Shown here piece after piece: positions 10,071-51,049 of a stretch of DNA of 64,000 bases. The position numbers were made by a program, and so were the translations under genes. Numbering within the stretch: the stretch's first letter is position 1; the number at the start of each line of letters is the position of its first letter. The stretch is from sequence record OP589283.1. One strand, written 5' to 3'. Below the pieces are notes generated by a model. That model searched no databases, was not told where the DNA came from, and was given only the letters and a program-made list of their open reading frames with translations.

Positions 10071-10976
10071 ATGGCTATTACACTCCATTTTGACAACCCT
10101 AACCCAGAGGGTGTTAAGTTAGAAATCTTCCGTGACACGGCCCACATTGACCGTGCTAACCTACCAGCTCCTATTGCGACAATTCTCACTCATGCTGATT
10201 CATGGACTGACGTAACTGCAATTAAAGGTGCGACGTACTACTACGTATTTAAAACCACCGGTGCAGTGGACTCTAAACTGACCCGCAACCTTGAAGTCAT
10301 TGCATTGGACGACAAAGGTGTGGGTAACGACAAACTGTACTTTGGTAACTTAGACTACGGTTACTATGGTAACGTATTGGTGAGTTCATTCTTCACTGGC
10401 GCACAGTTGATTTCTGCGTTGGGCATGACGTTCCCTTTACCCGGTACGGCAATTACCATGTGGCACAAGTTCGCCTATAAAGGCAAGACTGTGTTTGTAC
10501 CAAACAGTTTCGTGGGTAAAGGTCTAAGCTACAACGAATTAGTTGCTGCTGGTCTACGTGAAGGTAAGATTGTTCAATACGGACAATTCCAATACCGTGT
10601 ACGTCTGATGAAAGGTTTCGATCCAAACAGAAACTTCGGTGACTTTATCACCATGAACAACGGTTCTACTGATACAGCGCTTCTCCCAGACTTCGACAGC
10701 GAATTCGACCGTTTAGTGTACCCACTGTCCCGCTATATTCCAGTGAGACAAGCAACACACAACGTCGATTACCGCAACATGGCTGAACTAGGTTATGCCA
10801 CGAGTACTTGGTTCGTGATGGCAGAATTGAACGGTGATGCTTCGTTGTGCTTAACCCGTGGCACGAACACTGAAACAGCCGTTGGGTTAACAACCGCAGT
10901 TGCATTAACACCTGCTACTAAAGTAAACGGTGTGGCCTTCCTTCCAATCCTTGAACTGATCACTGACCAAGTTTAA
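10071..10976 (+). CDS. virion structural protein, tail/baseplate paralogue family, member 2
   Basis: N-terminal Ig/FnIII-like strand pattern; YGYYG, WHKFAYKGKTVFVP, QYRVRL and LPILEL motifs. Confidence 0.7.
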   Translation: MAITLHFDNPNPEGVKLEIFRDTAHIDRANLPAPIATILTHADSWTDVTAIKGATYYYVFKTTGAVDSKLTRNLEVIALDDKGVGNDKLYFGNLDYGYYGNVLVSSFFTGAQLISALGMTFPLPGTAITMWHKFAYKGKTVFVPNSFVGKGLSYNELVAAGLREGKIVQYGQFQYRVRLMKGFDPNRNFGDFITMNNGSTDTALLPDFDSEFDRLVYPLSRYIPVRQATHNVDYRNMAELGYATSTWFVMAELNGDASLCLTRGTNTETAVGLTTAVALTPATKVNGVAFLPILELITDQV

Positions 10977-10993
10977 TGTAAGTGGGGTGAGAC

Positions 10994-11980
10994 ATGGCTT
11001 TAACAATCAATTATGCATTAGACCCTAACACGGCTTCTGCTGTATTGAAACGCACTGTTGGTCGCGATTACTCCCCCGGTCAGGCTCCTGATGACACTGT
11101 GACACTTGATGTAGGTGCCGCAGCTTATTCATACGCTGATGGGGTAGAAGGTACCAAGTACGGTTTCATGATTACTGCAACAGATAGTACGGGTAAAACG
11201 ATTGACAGTAACCCGTTCAGTTTAGTTTATTTTGAAGACACTGGTCCTGGTGTACAGAATAAACCAACACGGGGTTATCCAGACTTTGGTGTCTTTGAGT
11301 TTCTGACTACTGCACAGTTTGGTAAAACACCGTCTGAAGTTCGTGATATGGTTATTGCGTTGGGTTTCCCAAGTGTAGGGTTACCTTATACTGGCACAAC
11401 GACAGGTTGGTATAAATGTCTAGTGGATGGCAAGATTATCTTAATTCCTAAGAACTTCTTCATCTACTTAGATTCGATACTCAGTCAGATGATTCCATCA
11501 CGACTCATCAGTTCCGGTCTTATCTCTGCGGGAGCCGCTGGCGCACATAACTTCGATAACTGCCCGATTGTGACCATCGGTGGTTTGAATTATAAATGGC
11601 GTGGTTTAAAACATTGGACGGGGGATTTAGTCGACATCAACGATAAGTTGAAGGAAACTACCGCTAAAGACTACGGTCGTTCAAGTGAAGCGGATATGTA
11701 CATGTGTTTGACCAACCCGACTACTGCAAACGCGGGTTATGACCCAGGATTGAGTGGGGCTTCAAATGTGGGTAAGACATTACCTCCATTCGTAGCGGGG
11801 GATGATAACCTCATTTTCGGACCCACAGCCAACGCGGGGATGGTGCTCTTGGGGAATGCTAACTGGCCCAATGCAAACGGGGCTTTCCGTTTAATGGGAA
11901 CAACGGCTAACTGGTTCTCGAGTACAGGTTCAATTTACGGTGCGAAAATGGTGCCGGTGCTTGAACTCGTCAGTAACTAA
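10994..11980 (+). CDS. virion structural protein, tail/baseplate paralogue family, member 3
   Basis: MALTINY start; TGPG..RGYPDFGVF, GWYKCLVDGKIILIPK, YKWRGL and VPVLEL motifs. Confidence 0.7.
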   Translation: MALTINYALDPNTASAVLKRTVGRDYSPGQAPDDTVTLDVGAAAYSYADGVEGTKYGFMITATDSTGKTIDSNPFSLVYFEDTGPGVQNKPTRGYPDFGVFEFLTTAQFGKTPSEVRDMVIALGFPSVGLPYTGTTTGWYKCLVDGKIILIPKNFFIYLDSILSQMIPSRLISSGLISAGAAGAHNFDNCPIVTIGGLNYKWRGLKHWTGDLVDINDKLKETTAKDYGRSSEADMYMCLTNPTTANAGYDPGLSGASNVGKTLPPFVAGDDNLIFGPTANAGMVLLGNANWPNANGAFRLMGTTANWFSSTGSIYGAKMVPVLELVSN

Positions 11981-42000: not shown

Positions 42001-42970
42001 TAGCACTGGTTAAGGTATTTAACGCATCATACTTTTCACTCCGGGAGTCTTTACCAAACTTCTCGTTTAACATTTCACGAATACCGCCAGATTTACTAAC
42101 TGCGGTATTGTAGATGCTTTCTCTTAAATTCTTTTTAACAAACTGACTGGTGGTAGTCTTTTGGAAATCAGACATCGCTGTTTGTTTGTTAATGGCTTTA
42201 AGCTCCTGAATCGCTCTGTGTTGAGCTTTTTCCATGAACTTATAGAACTTAGCGCTGGTAGCATATTGTCTCGCTAATAAGCTGATTTTAGCCTTATCGT
42301 TAGCCGTTTGAACACGTTGCTGATAGATGACAATATCTTGCAACGTTCTGTTCATTTGACCCATGCCGGATGCAATAGCGTTGCTGCTACCTAACAGGTG
42401 ACTTGCAGTCTGAGTGATTGTTTGACTAATTGCATCTCCCACAGTAGATAATGCAGAAACGGTGTTGTCTCCGCTTTGTGCCACTGTGCTAACTAATTGG
42501 TTAACTTCTTCATCAGAAGTTTCTTCCATCTTAATCGTGTCATCACTACTTGAGCTTGACTTCTCCCAATCACTGAAGTCGTGTTTAGAAAAGCTTTCAA
42601 CCCCCTCTGAAATCTTATTAGGCAAGTACCGGTCAATCTTATCTTTTGAAGATTTTGCGATAGATTGCAGGTTGACCATACTTTCATGGGTGTTATTTTT
42701 AATTTCTTGAATCAACTCACTGCGTTGTTGTTCAAGACGTGAAATATTACTAAAGAAAGGTTTAAAACTGTTGGGGAGAACGCGTTCTAATGTACGTAGA
42801 TTCGTAGAAGTGTCACCGTAGGTTGAATCAGTCGCACCTGCCAAAAATCCAGTAACAAAACTTTTTAATTTGCTTTTAGGTTTTGACGAATCGAAATCAT
42901 CATCAAAACTCATATCACCTTCAAATGGGTCATCTCCCCAATCGAAATCATCATCGAAATTATCACTCAT
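36089..42970 (-). CDS. tail tape-measure-like / cell-puncturing protein with C-terminal GH19 (chitinase-like) muramidase (phiKZ gp181 position)
   Basis: About 2290 aa from ATG 42970 (MSDNFDDD); long helical regions, hydrophobic Gly/Ala segments and internal repeats; C-terminal NAYVESGGF..ENLKY...GDGWRYRGRGFIQLTGKNNY. Confidence 0.85.
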   Translation of the reverse strand: MSDNFDDDFDWGDDPFEGDMSFDDDFDSSKPKSKLKSFVTGFLAGATDSTYGDTSTNLRTLERVLPNSFKPFFSNISRLEQQRSELIQEIKNNTHESMVNLQSIAKSSKDKIDRYLPNKISEGVESFSKHDFSDWEKSSSSSDDTIKMEETSDEEVNQLVSTVAQSGDNTVSALSTVGDAISQTITQTASHLLGSSNAIASGMGQMNRTLQDIVIYQQRVQTANDKAKISLLARQYATSAKFYKFMEKAQHRAIQELKAINKQTAMSDFQKTTTSQFVKKNLRESIYNTAVSKSGGIREMLNEKFGKDSRSEKYDALNTLTSAIEMTASMSEGMELDMFNIAGGLAGEYAVNALIPKLLKSGWTKKRIRSFIRKNPKLYKQLKGKYAWLDDKGGRLSYLTSNTEGLVNLAAKHSSSYDDYEGQDLSYDDYVERMQEEGKKPLNKVVWWTQEKIKAGATHVGNRLTEDLYNSSGTRITNKLRRHADLANPAKWSLRNDLTLNEVIPAHLANINLSLEKIRTGNNSLKAEHYDIVKARFIGQKERDSSVMSRVFAKNEVGSYADSSLRVVDKLDKDGVLTNDKTLRGKLAALVARNQDKGLAFSPYSYLELEGEGFTKAEAEKVRQLMISQWGLTQDDIDKFKSGNLGSVLEALAGIKDIKRLNEVSESYNYLGQSAQSIADRFDEMKAAGNTDALRRAGILKEDDTFDNELRWRLIEEYAKGNDPLSKTMEKAESKSKSNFNNGGFNSLQTPKANQDTEQPTAIDYTVFRELNENIKKLDFSKFDLGGLKNLEPTLAKINSGIADVAKNTADMKALLERVAKEGITTKTIVSRKEKQEKDEAEVQKQGILERIKGFGSGLFSGGMDKILKHDPLILGGLLGGLAATAFHDPKMAMLIGGVSALTVGYMKFHEKAQARGVYDDEDIYEEGAESPLLEAERLKRGEYYCAVAKKVLTSWKEIIGAVVTKTGALVASAYQLSKKLWTSKGKPILLAGLNKGKDLLFRAFRWLDPLNRLTKLKDAAVTRVKQSAVYLKTDTGVSRTPVLTRKGFQEGWYFDENGNPVTSWSDIKGPVYDRDMEPLITQTDYDNGLCNIFGVSLDTTKSTLGKVSKWLGEKFGIMKERFNPAMNRAKEMTKNAFTTDLTPVVSSVDRIYDLLMAHWKYSKTPPRFNDPVTGEPMPAEPGTAGVTPPVSSDKSKEGTVDPISKQRRKKAKGETPTTDKDGKPFVRENSFEDLKQEKEEKEEKEYRRSFLDMVRGLGKDKEKKEEKKGGLLSLLTSGFGLISGLLPKIATGILSIGGTLVSGIAAIVGALGGSWIPDFGGDKDLTPEQRKQNKADKEKAKREKVKAGNKGKAVSRFLKGGKLLGAGAALSYGTSALVSSGIVEEGGLVDDVSGVASTALGVAGTWGMANSVLGLGGYSVGGLLSSAAAGIAGLLSWPVVIGAAAVGAVGYGAYKAYKHFDKPKLPAQIRMAQYGVADSQSDLAARVFNLERFLEEYVVIKGTSASLSEQADVEGMLRLFLQNPKDGKEVEAFLSWFTYRFKPVFLNYCGTMQALDVKGMEAYDSDEDIIRYRIAKDVQRAINGITPNVYDVTPRIDKDTLLINLDNTTTFTDNLFEDWKELLGDALKTDVTTQLKMESKASLEAKRDELKQIARDDNFNGKNYFERTANLRELQDVEQKLKFLNNEAVVKFKSGNDLSVTDLMPEDGTLDPFVALRVGMYGVSLINQSEVEAVLYLERYCEKYVSINGQEVTFSKTPIDVYSEVSSVFGNNVSNRGTWINWFNSRFLPAFLGYMSYYNEYGTGAPGKNWTKLSATAKYKIAKALTLTKSLTGRRNLVIETTSYSAFKDGIDDELGEKILAYLSVLEEKSSRANLIDPIAEAKRTSTKAYLGKIVETNTKGQETLYTSNRTTGNDAKSRKDFMLAGGYGGNTYTKTYFEPIKGNTDTKMLDYGGVTANEGDDQGISVPRELAEQLIIKEMLARGFTDPREIALVLANAYVESGGFKKSTENLKYTDPKRMVDLFSEVKTIEQARSLMKAGPVTTANTVYGGAKGLSLGNTNPGDGWRYRGRGFIQLTGKNNYKSIGDRLGLDLVGNPKLASEDPNIMAKILVEYFASNKKMRTITENDNFAFASQGVNANLPDMDKRFGYYKDYLSSLVDGTLTAENKDEDKKAETVSTAAIPKKAPYQKSSIPFAGVAAPDDSVVNKQVATQPTGTTKPDGVPASLAPLPKETPAAPTPVQVINNNDELKKLLAGGINTNDPNSSKLLANILVELQKMNQSKNDPMTVALK

Positions 42971-43001
42971 ATGCTTACTCTCTTTTAATGAGGTTAGAAT
43001 A

Positions 43002-44462
43002 ATGAAACCAACCAGAATTAAATTATTAGACCCCAAAACAATTTTTCCACCTCTTATTAACGAAGTGAGTAGTGGGGACACGTTTGACCGGGGCACGCAC
43101 AACCTTCACGAAGAAGGGTTATATTCTCCTACCATCTTTGGTAGAATCGGACGTAAAGACCGGTTTTCCAAAGAAGGGTTTATCAATACGGGTGCACCTA
43201 TTTTAAACCCCACGTATTATAAAACTATCGTGGGATTGAACAACGGTCAAAACGGTTTATACGCCGGTATTTTGAAAGGGATCGTTTACGCAAAATGGGA
43301 TGCCCAGAAAAAGGATTTCATAAAATCCGATATCATCGAAGGAAGAACAGGATATAGTTTCTTTTTAGAACACTTATCTGAGTTCGCACCTGAGTTAAAA
43401 GATTCCCATTCCCGTAAGCAAGCCATTAAGTTAATTTTGGAAAACAAAGATAAAGCATTAATGAAACGCTTTATTGTCATTCCGGCAGGTTTACGGGATA
43501 TTGAACATCGCCCCGATGGTGGGGTTAAAGAAAAGGAAATTAATAAAACGTATCAACGTTTAATTTTCCGTGCCCGTTCTTTACAAGGTATTAACGAGCG
43601 TGATGAGAACGATCCTGTTTACGATAACTCTCGTGCATCCATTGGTGAAATTGTTAACGAAATAGACCACGAACTGTTTGAGATGTTAAACGGTAAGAGT
43701 GGTTTCATTCAATCTAAAGTAGGTACCCGTGGTTTAGTCAGTTCTACTCGTAACGTGATTGTGGCCAGACAAGTCAGTCGTACTCATTTAGACGAAGATG
43801 ACGGTAAAGGCATCAATAGCACCGATATCGGTTTATATCAAGCAATGTTGATGTACAATTATGCTTGTTTACATGAACTGATAAACGGTTGGTTATCCAC
43901 TATTTTTACAATAGGGGCTAACGTGGGTAAATTAGTTGATACCAAAACCTTAACTTCAGAATACGTGGATTTGAAACCAGACACCATCAGTAAGTGGACA
44001 ACCGTTGAAGGGTTAAATAAACTCATCTATGGTTTCAAGAACGTCCATCTACGCCATAAACCAATTGTGGTGGAAGGTTACTACCTTGGGTTAGTTTACG
44101 ACGATGGTAAAGAGGTTAAACTACTCAGTGACATCGGCGAACTTCCAGATGGAAGGGATAAAAAGTTTGTCACTCCATTGACGTACTTTGAAATGTTTTA
44201 TTTAATTTGTAACCAAGCCATTAAACAAAACCTGATGCAACAAACGCGTTACCCCATTATCGGTATCGGTAGTACGTATCCTTCTTATAACAATCTTGTT
44301 ACGGGAAGTGAAAACAAACCCCGTAACGTATTAAATGAAATGTGGGAAACCGAATATCGTTGTTTAAGTTATCCTGAGAAATCAGAACATCCAGTTTATT
44401 ATGACGCAATGTCTGTTGACATTAGTCGATATGCTAACTTGGACGCTGACAACGACGGCGAT
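43002..44462 (+). CDS. virion RNA polymerase beta' N-terminal subunit (phiKZ gp180-like), exon 1
   Basis: GLYSPTIFGRIG, VIPAGLRD, LNGKSGFI...RNVI, RYPIIG; ends at the catalytic LDADNDGD. GAGG SD before ATG 43002. Confidence 0.9.
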
Positions 44463-46263
44463 TTTCTTGTACATTAATAAAGATGTGATTATTGCACCTT
44501 CGTGTTCTATTTTATATAGATAAAACCGAGGAAATAACATGTCACTCTTTACTTTACATTATCTTAAACTTCCAGAGTCAAACATTACGTATGAACTCAA
44601 GAATGATTTTTTGTTCTACGATGGAGAAACCACTCTCCCCCACTTAACTTTTACTGACAGCCCAGATAAAGTGTTGGTTAAAAATCCGTCTCCTAAGAAG
44701 GAAGGTGACGCTTACCTTACACTGGATAGAGGGTTACTTATTCTTTTTGCATGTCGTCGTTTCTATCTTCCTCTCAGTTTATGGAGGATGGTTGATATTC
44801 AGTTTTTAGATGATAACACAAAAAATTATGACCCTCGTAACTTATATGTCATGTACAAAGAAAAAATACCCTATCCTGAATTGGAGGGATTTTACTACAT
44901 ACCAGGACACGAACTGAACGTCATCAATGAAAAAGGAGTGGTGTTTAATATTCCTTGCTCTAAACTCAGACCCCCGAAAATAAACAATGCGCACATTGAT
45001 AAGAACACCTACATCGGTACCACTGTAGAGATAAAACCTCATAAGTTTGTCACAAGGGTGTTACATCGATTACTAGGGTTGGTATTTAAGAACCCCCCCA
45101 AGGGTTATCCTAATTGTGTGGTAGACCATTTGAATGCGGTAAAGTACGATTTCTCATTGGATAATTTAGAATGGGTATCGTCAGGTGAGAATAATGACCG
45201 TGCTAAACAAATGGGGTTACGAACGGACAATAAACGAGTTGAAGTGTTAGACACTAAAACAGGTATAACGTCCACATACATCTCAGGTAATAGTGCAGCG
45301 GCCGCTATAGGCTGTTCTAACGGGATTTTGAGTAATGCGTTTACAAGTGGTTCTAGGGTAGTTAAAAAGCGGTGGAAAGTAAGGTACGTTGGAGAAGAAG
45401 TCAATTGGGATTCGATTTCAATCAAACCCAGCGGAAACTCAGAAGTAAAACCTATTTTAGCCAGAAATGTTGTGTCTGGTCATATTCGTAAGTTTCCGAG
45501 TGTAAGGGAAGCCATGCGAGTATTGTCAAAAGAAGGTGTACGCGTTCATTTGGCATCCATCACCAGACAAGTTAACAACTCTGCGGAGAAACGAATAACA
45601 GGCGGGTATGAATTCAAATACCAAGATGATAGTACACCTTGGCATGTATTCACTGAATGGGATGTAGAGGTATTTAGACGCGGCCTCAATACTCGTACAC
45701 CTGTTTATAACGTTACCGATGTTACCACCAAAGAGTCAACCATTTACTTTGGTTGGCAACCAGTTGCTTTATTAACTGGAGTAGAAAAGCGTGCTGTACT
45801 CATTGCAGCGGCTGAGGGTGGTATACTGGCTCGTAAGTTTAAGATAGTAAAGTTAAGGTAATAATGTATTATGTCCAGCTAGGCGCGAAAGCCCTAGACT
45901 GTTTTCCTTTGAATTGACTGGGACGACCACAAAAGTGAACCGCTACTGCTCATTAGAAATGATGAGTGACAGAGACGAAAGTCAGAAACAATGGTGTTCA
46001 CCTGCCCTATGCTAACCAATAACGCTAAGGGGTATTGACAAGGGTCTATCAGCAGCTAAGCTCCGTACGAGGGTTATCCCTCAGGAGAATGTCCAACGAC
46101 TAAGGCCTAGCCAGCCTGTACTCATGACATGGATTCGTTGTGGGGAAGTGGAGGAGACCTAAGGTTACAAAAGTAACTATGGTTAAGATATAGTCTGTCC
46201 CTGGCTTAAGAGCAAGGCGGGTGTCTGTGCACACCGGGTGTAAGTAATACACCGGACAAAGAG
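44463..46263 (+). mobile_element. group I intron (~1801 nt) carrying an HNH endonuclease ORF
   Basis: P AATTGACTGGGA (45912), Q ATCAGCAGC (46048), R GTCCAACGACTA (46091), S AAGATATAGTCT (46185); 5' exon ends in U, intron ends in G; splicing restores DGD-QLNANG in frame. Confidence 0.88.
44539..45861 (+). CDS. intron-encoded HNH homing endonuclease with three NUMOD1-like DNA-binding repeats
   Basis: VVDHLNAVKYDFSLDNLEWVSSGENN HNH motif; repeats KRVEVLD..TYISGNSAA, KPILARN..KFPSVREA and PVYNVTD..IYFGWQPVA; own GAGG SD. Confidence 0.92.
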   Translation: MSLFTLHYLKLPESNITYELKNDFLFYDGETTLPHLTFTDSPDKVLVKNPSPKKEGDAYLTLDRGLLILFACRRFYLPLSLWRMVDIQFLDDNTKNYDPRNLYVMYKEKIPYPELEGFYYIPGHELNVINEKGVVFNIPCSKLRPPKINNAHIDKNTYIGTTVEIKPHKFVTRVLHRLLGLVFKNPPKGYPNCVVDHLNAVKYDFSLDNLEWVSSGENNDRAKQMGLRTDNKRVEVLDTKTGITSTYISGNSAAAAIGCSNGILSNAFTSGSRVVKKRWKVRYVGEEVNWDSISIKPSGNSEVKPILARNVVSGHIRKFPSVREAMRVLSKEGVRVHLASITRQVNNSAEKRITGGYEFKYQDDSTPWHVFTEWDVEVFRRGLNTRTPVYNVTDVTTKESTIYFGWQPVALLTGVEKRAVLIAAAEGGILARKFKIVKLR

Positions 46264-46434
46264 CAATTGAACGCTAACGGGATTGTTGCAGAAGACAGTA
46301 AAGAAGAATGTAAAGGTTTATTCGGTAAACGTGACTTTTACATTGGTGGTGGGGATAACTTTTATTATACCCCGGTTACTGATACATTGGCTTGGTTGCT
46401 TAAATCTGCAACTTCGGGACTTAAATCCGTTTAG
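46264..46434 (+). CDS. virion RNA polymerase beta' subunit, exon 2 (56 aa, QLNANGIVAED...SGLKSV)
   Basis: Open 57-codon frame starting right after the terminal G and ending 8 nt before the beta gene; absent from the ORF track. Confidence 0.8.
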   Translation, partial: QLNANGIVAEDSKEECKGLFGKRDFYIGGGDNFYYTPVTDTLAWLLKSATSGLKSV

Positions 46435-46442
46435 GAAAGATT

Positions 46443-49400
46443 ATGAAACAGGCACCTTTATATGAATTGTGGTATCGTAAGCTCGGGTTACGTAAAAAGC
46501 AAAACATTGCTAACCCAATGTTTTTGTCTTTAGCGGAATTGAGTTTACCGTTATACAGCACAATTCATTATTTAGCAAAACATGAAAATGAGTTAGGCCC
46601 CAGCCCAAGTGAAACGTTAATTTCAAATTGGTTGGGCGAAAACATTTACATTAACTTTGTGAACACCTATACTCCTTATATTGGGAGTATTGGCCCTGCT
46701 GTGTTTGATCTACGTAAAAACATTAAGAAATATCGTGCAAGTCATTTTAACTATAGTTGGATTATGAACATCAATGACGTCTATAAACGTCGTGAAAATT
46801 TGATTGTTTGGAACCACGCTTGTGCGAATAAAACGTTCAAAGTAAGAGCAAGTCTTTTTGCTACCTATGAACGTTATTATAATGATTTCCGTAACGTAAT
46901 CGAAAGTGTTAATACCGTTACTGAAAAAGGATTACGTAATCAATTTTTAAGAATTGAACTACCCAATCGGATGCCGAACTTTTTACGTATTAGTGATGAT
47001 TTAAATCATTTTGCTAAGGTGCGTAGAGAATACGCCAAAACCGGCAAGATGATGCTGAATAAAGAAATGATGCGTCAGACAAAAGGCGAAAGTTGCTATT
47101 GGGTATTAGAGTTACTCAGCTTCTTATTAACAGATTTAGCAACTAATAAGAAAGGGGAAGAAGCTGAAGAAAAAATTAAAATAAGTTTATTTAACCTACT
47201 CAATGATGAGTCTAAACATAAATTAAATATTGTGTTTAGTTATCAAGGTACCGGATTTGTCGTTAACCTTGGTTTATTAGAAAGTTGGTTTAAAGAGCTT
47301 CGCGATGATGGTAGTCGTGTTAATGGTTTCAAACGTTTCTATCTTTCTCTTATCAAGTTGTCTAGCACCGAAATGGTTTTAGAGGACGAAAATGAAGAGA
47401 TTAAAAACACTGTCGAGGAGACTACGGAAGAACCAGAGGAACTGGATGAAGATGAGTCAGAGGCGCCCATTGAAAAAGATGAGCAAAAGGTCGCTGTTCA
47501 CGATACTACTCCTATTCTTGATATTTTCGCTGATCAAGTCGATTCTGATGACGGAAGTCTTCAATCCGGAGGAGACGAGGGAGGGGAAGATGATTCTGGA
47601 GAGCCTGCTGAACAGTCGTGGACCGATCCAGTAGACGATAGTCTATTTGAAGAGCCTGAGGTTGCCACTGAGACGGATTCAGGTCGTAATGTATTCGCTG
47701 ACCCTTCCGCAGGTATTGAACGCAGTCTTCGCTTAAAAGGGAAAGAGAACGGTATTAGCGCAAGAGAATACGCTCTCTTTAAAAAGAAATCGGAGTCTTA
47801 TAAAAACATTGTGTTACCTAACGGTGAAACGATGGAAACGTTTATGAAGATAGACGAAAAAGAACTCCGTAATCTTGACGGTAAAATTAAGGGGACTTTT
47901 GAAACCGTAAAAGACCCTTCGTTATTACAGTCTCGTACTTCGGAATTGCGTAAAGGGTACGTGAAGAAGTTTTTACATAAAGACATCATTCGTACTTTAG
48001 TTGCTTTCCAAAACAGTGGTACCGCGTTAACTGATTTGTCTATCACTGAAGAGGGTGACAAAGAAGGGATGTATGAAATTTATAACGCGCAATTCCATCC
48101 TGTTGGGGGAACTGTTAAAACCGTTCCTATTCGCATGCCGAAAGTGCTACCTGACTGCACCATCATGATAGATGGTAATAAAAGCTATTTACAAAACCAA
48201 CGCATGGAACTCCCTATTCGTAAGGTGAGACATGACGAAGTAATGCTATCTAGCTTTTATGGTACACGATTAAGTTTAAAACGCAGCCGTATGGTGAAGG
48301 ACGATTATCATCTTTGGTTATTACGTCAAATCATCAAAGGGGATAAAATCAACGGTTATCAAATTGCATTGGGTCGTAGTAAAACAAGCCACTTAAAGGT
48401 TCCTCAACTTTATTACACGCTTGCAGCCAAATTTAAATCTATTGCATTTGATGACATGACCTTTGTTTTCTCAATGGACACGTTGATTGAAGAAGACCCA
48501 GCGATTGAAAAGTTGAATTCCCCTGATAGTGTAGTCATCGGTAAAAAGGGTGACAAATACATTACATTGGATGCGTTTAACAACGTTTATGTCGGGGATG
48601 AGTTAAAAGGTGGGTTTACTGAGTTAGTTAAAATCGACCAGCGCAAAGCTCCTGTTGATATGGTGAGTTTGTTGTTGAATAACGTAAACTTCCCTATTGT
48701 TATTTTGTTGTGTTATTATTTCGGTATCGATAAACTATTGCAGGTTACCAAAGCAAATTATCGTGTGGTACCGAGTAATGAGAAAACTGTCTTAACCAAT
48801 GACGAATTCAAAGTCGTATTTAACGACGAGACACTGGTCTTTAACCGTAACGACCGGGTGACCACGTTAATCTTTGGTGGATTAGTTGGGTTGAAAAACT
48901 TAAGTAACTTTAACAGAGTTGACTTAAATAACAACGATAACTTGCTTACGGTGATGGGTTCGGAAAGTAAAGCAAAAATCACTCACTTCTATGAAATGGA
49001 ACGGCTGTATCGTTTGTTCATCGACCCTATCACTAAAGATGAATTAATTCGTCTGAAGTACTCTGTTGACTTTGATTATTTGTTGTTGGATGCTGTTGAG
49101 CTATTAAAAGACAGTTATCACCGCAATGAAGTGGAAATTGAAGAGCAACGGATTAGTGGTTATGAACGTTTAGTTGGACACATGTACACGCAACTCTGTC
49201 GTGCTAACCGTGAATACGGTAACAAGACAACAGGTAAGAAAGTTTTCTCATTAAATCCTGATGCTGTGTTGATGGCCATCCAACTGGATACCAGTTTAAA
49301 CCAAGTGGAAGAGGTCAACCCATTCCACCAAATCAAAAGTGATGAGGAGGTTACGTTCGGTGGTACTGGTGGTCGCGGTGACGATGTAATGGTCGCCAGA

Positions 49401-49601
49401 ACCCGTGCTCAGCTACAAAGTTATCGTGGTGTGATTTCTGAAGCGCATAAAGACAACCAAAAGGTGGGGTATGTTACCCACTTAACGTCAGATGCTCGTA
49501 TCAGTGATTATCGTGGTAACATTGATAGCAAAGAAACAATAACCAATGCAGGACTAGCGTCTGTAACAGGTAACTTGTATTACGGTTCCTTTAAAGATGA
49601 T
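46443..49601 (+). CDS. virion RNA polymerase beta subunit N-terminal part (phiKZ gp178-like), exon 1
   Basis: IDGNKSYLQNQR, QVEEVNPF, VTFGGTGGR, GVISEAHKDNQKVG; ends ...GSFKDD. Confidence 0.88.
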
Positions 49602-49942
49602 CAACATAGGGTCCCCTTATTTGGAAACAGATAAGGTGCTATAACCTCTAATTGCTGGGAGGGTTTGTTAAACCTCATTACACCACTGCGTAACTGGAAA
49701 CGGTAAACGTGAAGGTTTGAAAAGTAATGAGCTGAACCTAGTCAGCAGCAAAGCACCTAAGGTATTGTTGAGATAACAAGATACGGTGTGCGTCCAGAGA
49801 CTATCGCTGAAATGCGAGTAGGGGTCTAGTGTGATTCCGAAACGGGGTTTGCTTACCGTGGACTGAAGAAGTCCTATACGGTTGCATGAAATATAGTCCA
49901 CTGTGTTCGATGATTTCTTATGGATAAGAATAGAGCACATTG
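49602..49942 (+). mobile_element. group I intron (341 nt) without ORF
   Basis: P AATTGCTGGGA (49650), Q AGTCAGCAGC (49740), R GTCCAGAGACTA (49792), S GAAATATAGTCC (49888); exon 1 ends GAU, intron ends G; splicing gives DD-PKR in frame. Confidence 0.88.
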
Positions 49943-51049
49943 CCCAAGAGAACCAGCTTCAGTAACGGCCAAGCATCTCAAATCATGGCGTCATCAGGTT
50001 ATCAAGTTAACCCAATGCGCACAGGTTATGAGGTAGTCATGCCACATCGAAACTACGACCTTTACACTAAGGTTGCTGAACAAGATGGGGTGGTTACTGA
50101 AGTTACCGATAAATATTTATTGGTAACTTATAAAGACGGTTCGACAGACACCTACTTGTTAGGTTATGAAGTGGGTTCTGCGGCAGGTGAGTATCATAAG
50201 CACAATAAAGTAACCGATTTAAAAGTAGGTGATAAATTCAAAGCCGGAGAGGTGATTGGATTTAACGATGTGTGGTTTGCTCGTGACTTCTATAATCCAG
50301 GGCAAGTGGCTGCTAAAACAGGTATCTTGACAGGTGTTGCGTTAACCCAAGGGATTAACGTTTACGAAGACAGTATTAGTATTAGTGCTGATTTCGCTAA
50401 AAAGTCAAGCTCCAGCTTCATTAAGCAGATTAGCTTTAGTGCGGCTTTAAAAGACACCATCGTTGAAAAAATCAAAGTGGGGCAAACAGTCGATCATGAC
50501 CAAGTGTTATTTGAGGTCATTGAAGAGAGTGTTGCAGCACTTAACGATGAGAATGAGGACGCGGCTGATATTAACCGTTTAGGCATTCGACAAGTTAAGA
50601 GTAACCACCACGGTGTGATTAAAAAGGTCGAGGTTTCCTACAATGGTGATTATGCTGATATGAGCAGTTCAGTCTTGAAGTTTGTTAAACCTAAAGACAA
50701 AGAAGTTGCTGACTTAGCAAAAGTCACTAAAAGCAAGATTGTTGACAACCGAGTATCAGGTGGTAAAAACGTTCCTCCTGGTCGTATCAAAGTCCGTGTC
50801 TACATTGATGCGGAAGAAAGCAGTGTGGTTGCTGACAAATTTGTAGTGGGTAACCAAATGAAATGTACTGTTAACAGTATTTACACTAAGCGCATGTACA
50901 CTCAATCTGGTATTCCAATTGACCTCACATTCAGTTATAAGAGTTTGTTTGGTCGGATGGTATTGAGTTTACGTGATAAGTTAGTGGGTAACCAGTTAAC
51001 TGAAATCGTTTCAAAACAATTTGTTGATATTTACAGGGGTGAACAATGA
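49943..51049 (+). CDS. virion RNA polymerase beta subunit, exon 2
   Basis: PKRTSF, YEDSISIS (equivalent of bacterial FEDSI) and DKFVVGNQMKCTV (equivalent of GDKMAGRHGNKG). Confidence 0.88.
   Translation, partial: PKRTSFSNGQASQIMASSGYQVNPMRTGYEVVMPHRNYDLYTKVAEQDGVVTEVTDKYLLVTYKDGSTDTYLLGYEVGSAAGEYHKHNKVTDLKVGDKFKAGEVIGFNDVWFARDFYNPGQVAAKTGILTGVALTQGINVYEDSISISADFAKKSSSSFIKQISFSAALKDTIVEKIKVGQTVDHDQVLFEVIEESVAALNDENEDAADINRLGIRQVKSNHHGVIKKVEVSYNGDYADMSSSVLKFVKPKDKEVADLAKVTKSKIVDNRVSGGKNVPPGRIKVRVYIDAEESSVVADKFVVGNQMKCTVNSIYTKRMYTQSGIPIDLTFSYKSLFGRMVLSLRDKLVGNQLTEIVSKQFVDIYRGEQ

Follow-up and report, generated by a model that had tools for sequence, protein, structure and literature searches.

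The window analysed here is a 64,000-nucleotide (nt) stretch of OP589283.1, the 203-kb genome of the Shewanella phage FishSpeaker, whose host is S. oneidensis MR-1 (100% identity over 42900-47000); the literature searched yielded no paper naming this phage. Our subject is an interruption in the gene of the virion RNA polymerase (RNAP) beta-prime N-terminal subunit, a phiKZ gp180-like gene, together with the HNH endonuclease gene that lies inside the interruption. We regard it as probable that this element is a mobile group I intron with an I-HmuI-type HNH homing endonuclease, and that the primary role of the enzyme is the propagation (homing) of its own intron.

The features of the locus are collected in Table 1. 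The gene order is also that of the Pseudomonas phages EL and phiKZ (gp181, gp180, gp179 and gp178 in the latter) and of the Raoultella phage VB_ZK_P1. The first exon comprises 487 codons, the last of which read DADNDGD (44442-44462), and its product is 47-54% identical in amino acids (aa) to those of the gp180-like genes of EL, RisingSun, Miami and Aphrodite1. The second exon is missing from the GenBank annotation.

Table 1. Features of the FishSpeaker RNAP locus, with positions in the window
Feature	Position	Strand	Basis or remark
Group I intron, 1801 nt	44463..46263	+	Alignment with intron-less proteins; Rfam RF00028
Intron leader	44463..44538	+	5′ strand of the proposed extended P1 stem; Shine-Dalgarno (SD) GAGG at 44528-44531
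Homing endonuclease gene, 440 aa + stop	44539..45861	+	ATG start, intact frame, placed in P1 loop
N-terminal extension, aa 1-118	44539..44892	+	No I-HmuI counterpart
I-HmuI-like N-terminal beta domain and HNH (beta-beta-alpha-metal) nuclease, aa 119-229	44893..45225	+	Pfam HNH_3, 1U3E profile alignment
HNH motif, aa 191-219	45109-45195	+	D196, H197, N209, N218
Repeat 1, NUMOD1-like helix-turn-helix, aa 230-292	45226..45414	+	Equivalent to the I-HmuI C-terminal DNA-binding domain
Repeat 2, helix-turn-helix, aa 302-368	45442..45642	+	hhalign against repeat 1, E 2.6e-10; secondary structure of model
Repeat 3, helix-turn-helix, aa 384-440	45688..45858	+	hhalign against repeat 1, E 8.7e-9; model
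Ribozyme core, P2 to P9	45853..46217	+	Rfam RF00028, 53.9 bits, E 7e-11; gathering threshold 50
Putative internal guide sequence GUC(C)	45873..45876	+	Conserved position directly 5′ of P2
P2 hairpin CUAGGCGCGAAAGCCCUAG	45879..45897	+	Conserved; compensatory changes across family
3′ extension hairpins after P9 and terminal G46263	46218..46263	+	Sequence
Exon 1, virion RNAP beta-prime N-terminal subunit (phiKZ gp180-like)	43002..44462	+	Open reading frame (ORF) and GenBank coding sequence (CDS)
Exon 2 of gp180-like gene	46264..46437	+	57 codons (QLNANGIVAEDSKEE...GLKSV) + stop
GenBank 'tail fiber protein'		-	First in locus order, then RNAP beta
GenBank 'RNA polymerase beta subunit'	43002-44477		Reads 4 codons (FLVH) into intron; stop 44475-44477
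GenBank 'HNH endonuclease' UYE93571.1	44539-45861		
GenBank second 'RNA polymerase beta subunit'	46443-49634		
GenBank third 'RNA polymerase beta subunit'	50039-51049		
ORF-less group I intron, 341 nt	49602-49942		In gp178-like RNAP beta gene, after ..KDD (GAT GAT/); ends in G

Intron boundaries, ribozyme and insertion sites

The boundaries of the intron were set by alignment with the proteins of two intron-less phages, Aphrodite1 (a Vibrio phage) and Miami (a Klebsiella phage), which read ..DGD/QLNSN.. across the junction (here and below, a slash marks an insertion point). Their genes encode an uninterrupted ..GGDYDGDQLNSNG.., whereas in FishSpeaker ..DADNDGD is followed by FLVH and a stop codon, and the frame DADNDGD/QLNANG is regained only if exactly the 1801 nt from 44463 to 46263 are removed. 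By this homology, the 5′ splice site falls after U44462, the 3′ splice site after G46263, and the insertion directly after the third Asp codon of the DxDGD motif (DxDGD/Q) of the gp180-like gene. Exon 2 has neither an SD nor an ATG; it is conserved, homologous to the C-terminal 55 aa of the intron-less genes and colinear with the C-terminal end of all homologues that lack the intron. The spliced beta-prime subunit would thus have 544 aa.

Rfam gave one group I intron match above threshold within the interruption, at 45853-46217. A family alignment of nine related ribozymes provided consensus helices P2, P4-P6, P7, P8 and P9, with compensatory changes at 31 of the 56 predicted pairs. The hairpins of the 3′ extension are kept, with one G-C to G-U change, in two related contigs, L010, which comes from the Logan assembly of one wastewater run, and L012. 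All seven related introns checked end in G, and each of the seven starts after U. The sequence (A/U/G)GUCC stands immediately 5′ of P2 in 12 of 12 related introns, irrespective of where these are inserted, and all 12, among them that of phiPA3 and a second intron of FishSpeaker, are preceded by an Asp GAU codon. Because GUCC before P2 is conserved and every intron follows GAU, we infer that GUC (45873-45875) is the internal guide and that it pairs with the final three bases of the exon, GAU, the pair at the splice site being a G-U wobble. Since this guide begins 11 nt after the end of the endonuclease ORF, the ORF would lie in the loop of an extended P1; helices closing that loop over a long range can, in our own reading, be drawn for each of FishSpeaker, L010 and L012, their sequences being different, and an alternative fold exists. 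Self-splicing of the intron is predicted.

Other candidate elements were rejected. A possible guide within the ORF at 44753 (GUCGUCGU), complementary to the exon over 8 bp, has a complementarity that is not kept in L010 and L012, and by our own estimate ~0.16 such matches are expected by chance. Another in the leader, AUUGC (44491-44495), the favourite by minimum free energy, would form a U-A pair and not a G-U wobble, and does not covary with exon position -4 in L010 and L012. Neither L010 nor L012 keeps the hairpin with which the Rfam alignment opens (45857-45878). In the minimum-free-energy fold of the leader (44482-44543), the SD and AUG of the endonuclease lie in a weak hairpin (z -1.95) that recalls the translational control of T4 intron endonucleases. 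A scan for sigma-70 promoters and terminators gave results no better than shuffles, sigma-70 being the wrong promoter type for phiKZ-like phages.

Homologous introns are found at three positions, spaced over 12 nt, among the DxDGD codons (44442-44462; loci L002, L004, L005, L008, L009 and L037). Site A, after the first Asp codon (GxD/xDGD), is used in phiKZ, Vibrio phage 2 TSL-2019 and PDCC-1; site B, after the second (DxD/GD), in EL and, by an ORF-less intron, in phiKp_32; and site C, after the third (DxDGD/Q), in FishSpeaker, VB_ZK_P1, contigs L010 and L012 and, again by an ORF-less intron, in VP4B. Among the 120 best exon 1 homologues, 92 are intron-less, ~12 end at the third site, ~9 at the second and 2 at the first, with 5 unclear cases. 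The endonuclease tree is not sorted by site, since the enzyme of VB_ZK_P1 (third site) is nearer, with moderate support, to those of EL (second) and TSL-2019 (first) than to that of FishSpeaker. A P1 of three base pairs, GAU/GUC, would explain how one intron lineage comes to stand after any Asp codon of DxDGD. PhiKZ gp179 has been a predicted intron endonuclease since 2002; the FishSpeaker intron and its endonuclease are an addition to the phiKZ gp179/EL gp185 family, and HNH homing endonucleases in RNAP introns of jumbo phages are in themselves not new.

The neighbouring gp178-like gene is interrupted as well. Its frame reads ..GSFKDD and then QHRVPLFGNR up to a stop at 49634, the next annotated CDS begins at 50039, and GenBank lists two separate CDS. 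In L010, whose flanks are 99.3% identical, the gene encodes an uninterrupted ..GSFKDDPKRTSFSNGQ.. and lacks this second insertion. The insertion scores only 19 bits in Rfam but contains GUCCCC, a hairpin resembling P2 and the family's consensus blocks for P4, P6 and P7. It is located exactly at the insertion site of the phiPA3 gp210 intron, and a site occupied in this way would be expected to be immune to gp210-type enzymes. A mirror image of this arrangement is seen in Klebsiella phage phiKp_32, which has an ORF-less intron at DxD/GD of the gp180-like gene (L009:6658-7037) and an HNH gene (10412-11464) beside the gp178-like gene.

The endonuclease and its modules

A sequence-only reading of this stretch had described a 440-aa ORF with its own SD, situated 5′ of a ribozyme core and encoding a ~130-aa N-terminal extension, an HNH core and three NUMOD1-like repeats. 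This description was borne out. The ORF is present, its SD lies 7 nt 5′ of the ATG, and it stands 5′ of the ribozyme core and of the guide, as given above. The HNH core was recovered by Pfam as HNH_3 at aa 191-219 (E 4.8e-9), PHROGs placed the protein in phrog_59 'HNH endonuclease', and NUMOD1 (aa 232-260) and I-HmuI_NUMOD-like (aa 313-329) were seen below the Pfam cut-off. A search of 5.8 billion proteins yielded 12 homologues at 32-100% identity; positions 111-274 of their profile align to residues 6-170 of I-HmuI (PDB 1U3E, 174 aa) with E 8e-12, which was the only significant match to a solved structure. In agreement with this, the single significant Foldseek match in the PDB of an AlphaFold2 model of the protein (predicted local distance difference test, pLDDT, 81) was also 1U3E (E 5e-8). 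The model contains three beta-beta-helix-turn-helix-beta modules C-terminal to the nuclease, and profile-profile comparison identified them as internal repeats (Table 1). The length given for the extension was roughly right; it measures ~118 aa relative to I-HmuI, and ~190 aa precede the HNH motif.

In the profile alignment to 1U3E, D196, H197, N209 and N218 stand opposite D74, H75, N87 and N96 of I-HmuI, and H197, N209 and N218 are invariant in the 12 homologues. Homologues at 24-37% identity occur in VB_ZK_P1, EL, TSL-2019, phiKZ (gp179) and phiPA3 (gp210), where they lie in the corresponding RNAP gene or in the one next to it. By profile and model, the FishSpeaker protein is I-HmuI-like, a predicted HNH_3 homing endonuclease with intact catalytic residues. 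As to the N-terminal extension, hhalign aligned PLSLWRMVDIQFLDDNTKNYDPRNL (aa 78-102) with PPKGYPNCVVDHLNAVKYDFSLDNL (aa 186-210), placing Ile87 opposite His197 (P 0.002, probability 13%), and in the ESM Atlas the N-terminal part fell near HNH_3/NUMOD4 clusters both by features (0.90-0.91) and by structure (template-modelling score, TM, ~0.4). These lines are all weak, and they offer a lead that the extension may be a degenerate duplicate of a NUMOD4 plus HNH_3-like unit that has no catalytic His.

On one IMG/VR contig, the gene of another family member, an HNH protein of 550 aa (L061:4650-6299), stands directly 3′ of an uninterrupted gp180-like gene and may be free-standing.

Mobility, relatives and the role of the enzyme

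FishSpeaker and L010 differ at 11 of 1479 positions in exon 1 (~99% identical) and at 22 of 3159 in the next gene, and their ribozyme cores are identical or nearly so; taking in exon 2 as well, identity outside the cassette is ~99-100%. Between them, 44463-45870 (against L010:4033-5445) is only 42-69% identical in nucleotides, the proteins are 52% identical and synonymous sites are saturated (proportion of synonymous differences, pS, 0.78). Such a pattern indicates that the contrast is a swap of the whole P1-loop cassette, with the 5′ splice site and the guide as its limits, and not fast divergence. The endonuclease genes of L010 and L012 have a ratio of nonsynonymous to synonymous changes (dN/dS) of 0.10, which indicates that these sister genes are under purifying selection. 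In two wastewater runs (X6 and X8), contigs run from 44560 straight to 45832 but for two added letters (TC), so that 1271 nt of the endonuclease gene are gone and the ORF is left with its first 7 codons and its last 10. Because these runs are represented by contigs and are probably DNA, this joint is a population variant and not a product of RNA processing. The FishSpeaker-type cassette is present in two other wastewater runs. The cassette swap and the endonuclease-less version together suggest that the intron element is, or recently was, mobile.

At both introns, FishSpeaker and L010 have different exon bases 4 nt 5′ of the splice site (44459, C/A; 49598, T/C), both changes being synonymous on a background of ~0.7% overall divergence; 44459 is the nearest to the splice site of only 11 exon 1 differences. 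Co-conversion or a change of the target site are possible causes.

Relatives that could receive the intron were looked for in several collections. All four gp180-like homologues at at least 78% identity are interrupted at the FishSpeaker site, and the nearest intron-less allele, at 57% aa identity, belongs to unknown or other hosts. The intron-less junction was absent from the four wastewater runs that hold the FishSpeaker phage group. No intron-less allele encoding DADNDGDQLNANG was found in IMG/VR or the JGI metagenomes, and neither was the intron-containing control pattern; because the control is also absent, these collections lack the clade and do not decide the matter. The nearest intron-less alleles have 36-42 of 60 junction bases in common with FishSpeaker, and the 21 nt of DNA 5′ of the junction encode the catalytic motif and are under constraint for that reason (consensus GAC-ayGAyGGnGAy), so that cutting across lineages is conceivable.

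In the mechanism that we propose, the intron would self-splice to restore the 544-aa subunit, and the endonuclease would be translated from its own SD within the P1 loop. The enzyme may bind a long stretch of an intron-less allele around the ..GAC GGC GAT/CAA TTG AAC.. junction with the beta domain beside its HNH nuclease, with the three helix-turn-helix modules and possibly with a dead HNH-like N-domain, and it would nick one strand near the insertion site, like I-HmuI and phiPA3 gp210. Recombinational repair from the intron-carrying genome would then copy the intron, or the endonuclease cassette alone, into the nicked genome. Harm done to a diverged phage in the same cell would be a side effect of this process, with at most a putative benefit to FishSpeaker.

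Several observations count against homing by a self-splicing intron. A P1 with only three exon base pairs (GAU/GUC) is unusually short, and the guide was assigned by conservation alone. A search for RNA runs of FishSpeaker infections came up empty, and those runs labelled 'RNA-Seq' or metatranscriptome behave like DNA, with no exon-exon joint in them. For the phiKZ homologue, splicing was not detected by long-read transcriptomics (ONT-cappable-seq) under the conditions used (PMC10914365). Among family members inserted at DxDGD there is no known activity or cut site, and no close intron-less relative was found as a possible homing recipient.

The sequence-only reading had gone further and had the enzyme target the conserved DxDGD-coding DNA of intron-less jumbo phages, for homing and for interference, with phiPA3 gp210, which cuts an essential phiKZ RNAP gene and blocks the competitor, as the precedent. 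This account of the precedent is correct: gp210 nicks phiKZ gp178 at a site homologous to its own intron insertion (Birkholz et al. 2024, PMC11620839), which lowers the fitness of phiKZ and gives phiPA3 a relative advantage, with escapers mapping 2 nt upstream (PMC11620839), and the effect required import into the rival's nucleus or hybrid nuclei (PMC11620839). The proposed target is supported in part. In its favour are an intron-encoded, I-HmuI-like enzyme with catalytic residues intact, an intron directly after the DxDGD codons, the 92 intron-less alleles among the 120 best homologous ones and the signs of recent mobility; against it, gp210 sits after DD in a gp178-like gene and not at DxDGD, and all four of the nearest homologues (at least 78% identity) are already interrupted. 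Homing is thus the supported function, and interference is a plausible possibility by analogy with gp210. Taken as a selected weapon, the enzyme would act in co-infections with diverged jumbo phages that lack the intron; it would nick their DxDGD region and disable the virion RNAP gene of these rivals, which cannot repair it from FishSpeaker DNA, and FishSpeaker would gain fitness. We consider such a selected role unlikely. It has a family precedent in gp210, the same type of enzyme in the neighbouring RNAP gene; the abundance of intron-less alleles, the constraint on the 21 nt 5′ of the junction and the junction bases common to the nearest of these alleles would all favour it, the endonuclease family is under purifying selection, and the ORF-less intron at the gp210 target site in FishSpeaker is what immunity would look like. 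However, no phage of this host or lineage is known to lack the intron, the closest homologues being all interrupted and such a junction being absent from the four runs, and purifying selection and mobility are equally expected of a purely selfish element. Moreover, the gp210 effect hinged on nuclear import or hybrid nuclei, and nucleus formation and import would be hypothetical for FishSpeaker.

A very improbable alternative is that the endonuclease no longer cuts and is a decaying passenger, or that it has been kept for another role such as maturase-like help in RNA folding. In the close relatives known so far, the intron seems to have reached fixation, which is the usual stage of endonuclease decay, an endonuclease-less version exists in nature, and the N-terminal HNH-like module already lacks its His. 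Nevertheless, the frame of 440 codons is intact, the active-site residues D196, H197, N209 and N218 are intact and invariant in the family, the sister lineages have a dN/dS of 0.10, and the recent swap of the cassette implies that the mobility function works; there is no known HNH maturase, which counts against the folding role. It is also conceivable, at extremely low probability, that no splicing takes place, that the beta-prime N-subunit really ends after DxDGD and that the endonuclease is effectively free-standing between two RNAP genes. The GenBank annotation has this form, the phiKZ gp179 transcriptome result cited above agrees with it, and contig L061 has a related HNH gene just 3′ of an uninterrupted gp180-like gene. 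Yet a complete group I ribozyme follows the ORF, and exon 2, which has no SD or ATG, is conserved and comes into frame only after the removal of exactly 1801 nt, the same being true for seven related introns.

A wider scheme can be put forward tentatively, as something possible that we would not yet lean on. One intron lineage with a 3-bp guide, GUC/GAU, would land after any catalytic Asp GAU codon (the three in DxDGD of beta-prime, and DD of beta), the endonuclease would be an exchangeable P1-loop cassette and ORF-less copies would confer immunity to the nickases of relatives. FishSpeaker would then take part in a contest between introns for the RNAP active site, with a weapon at DxDGD and a shield at DD. 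The annotation of an essential FishSpeaker gene is corrected by two introns and an unannotated exon, and S. oneidensis MR-1 is a tractable, non-pathogenic host in which to ask whether the phiPA3 result of an intron endonuclease used as a weapon generalises. With three sites within 12 nt, the GAU/GUC rule, the cassette swap, the endonuclease-less variant and the ORF-less intron at the gp210 site, the locus forms a compact natural system for how homing endonucleases and introns move and are resisted.

Comparison with related phage introns

The closest enzyme of solved structure, I-HmuI from the DNA polymerase intron of Bacillus phage SPO1 (PDB 1U3E), has the same order of parts, a beta-sheet DNA-binding domain, the HNH_3 nuclease and, C-terminal to it, helices with a helix-turn-helix of the NUMOD1 type. 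I-HmuI aligns over its entire length (174 aa) to FishSpeaker aa ~121-284, the D/H/N/N active site is common to both, and both genes lie in a phage group I intron of a conserved polymerase gene. In contrast, the FishSpeaker protein is 2.5 times longer, with an extra N-terminal region of ~118 aa and two extra helix-turn-helix modules, its host gene encodes an RNA polymerase and not a DNA polymerase, and its nicking is predicted.

The predicted intron endonucleases phiKZ gp179, EL gp185 and VB_ZK_P1 gp270 (the 'PHIKZ179 family') share with FishSpeaker the gp180-like host gene and the order tail fibre, gp180-like gene, HNH gene, ribozyme, exon 2 and gp178-like gene. They also have the same ribozyme family, with a GUCC guide and P2, and a homologous protein that includes the N-terminal extension (27-37% identity). 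The insertion sites within the family are 6 or 12 nt apart, that of VB_ZK_P1 being the FishSpeaker site, and phiKZ gp179, with 357 aa and fewer C-terminal modules, is shorter than the FishSpeaker enzyme.

PhiPA3 gp210 belongs to the same enzyme family as the FishSpeaker protein (24% identity over aa 115-373, E 3e-10) and to the same family of GUCC-guide introns, and both are inserted in a virion RNAP gene after an Asp GAU codon of the catalytic region. The gene and site of gp210 are different ones, after DD in the gp178-like beta subunit, and the protein, of 330 aa, is without the N-terminal extension. Finally, the activity and competitive effect of gp210 are experimental, whereas for the FishSpeaker enzyme both are putative.

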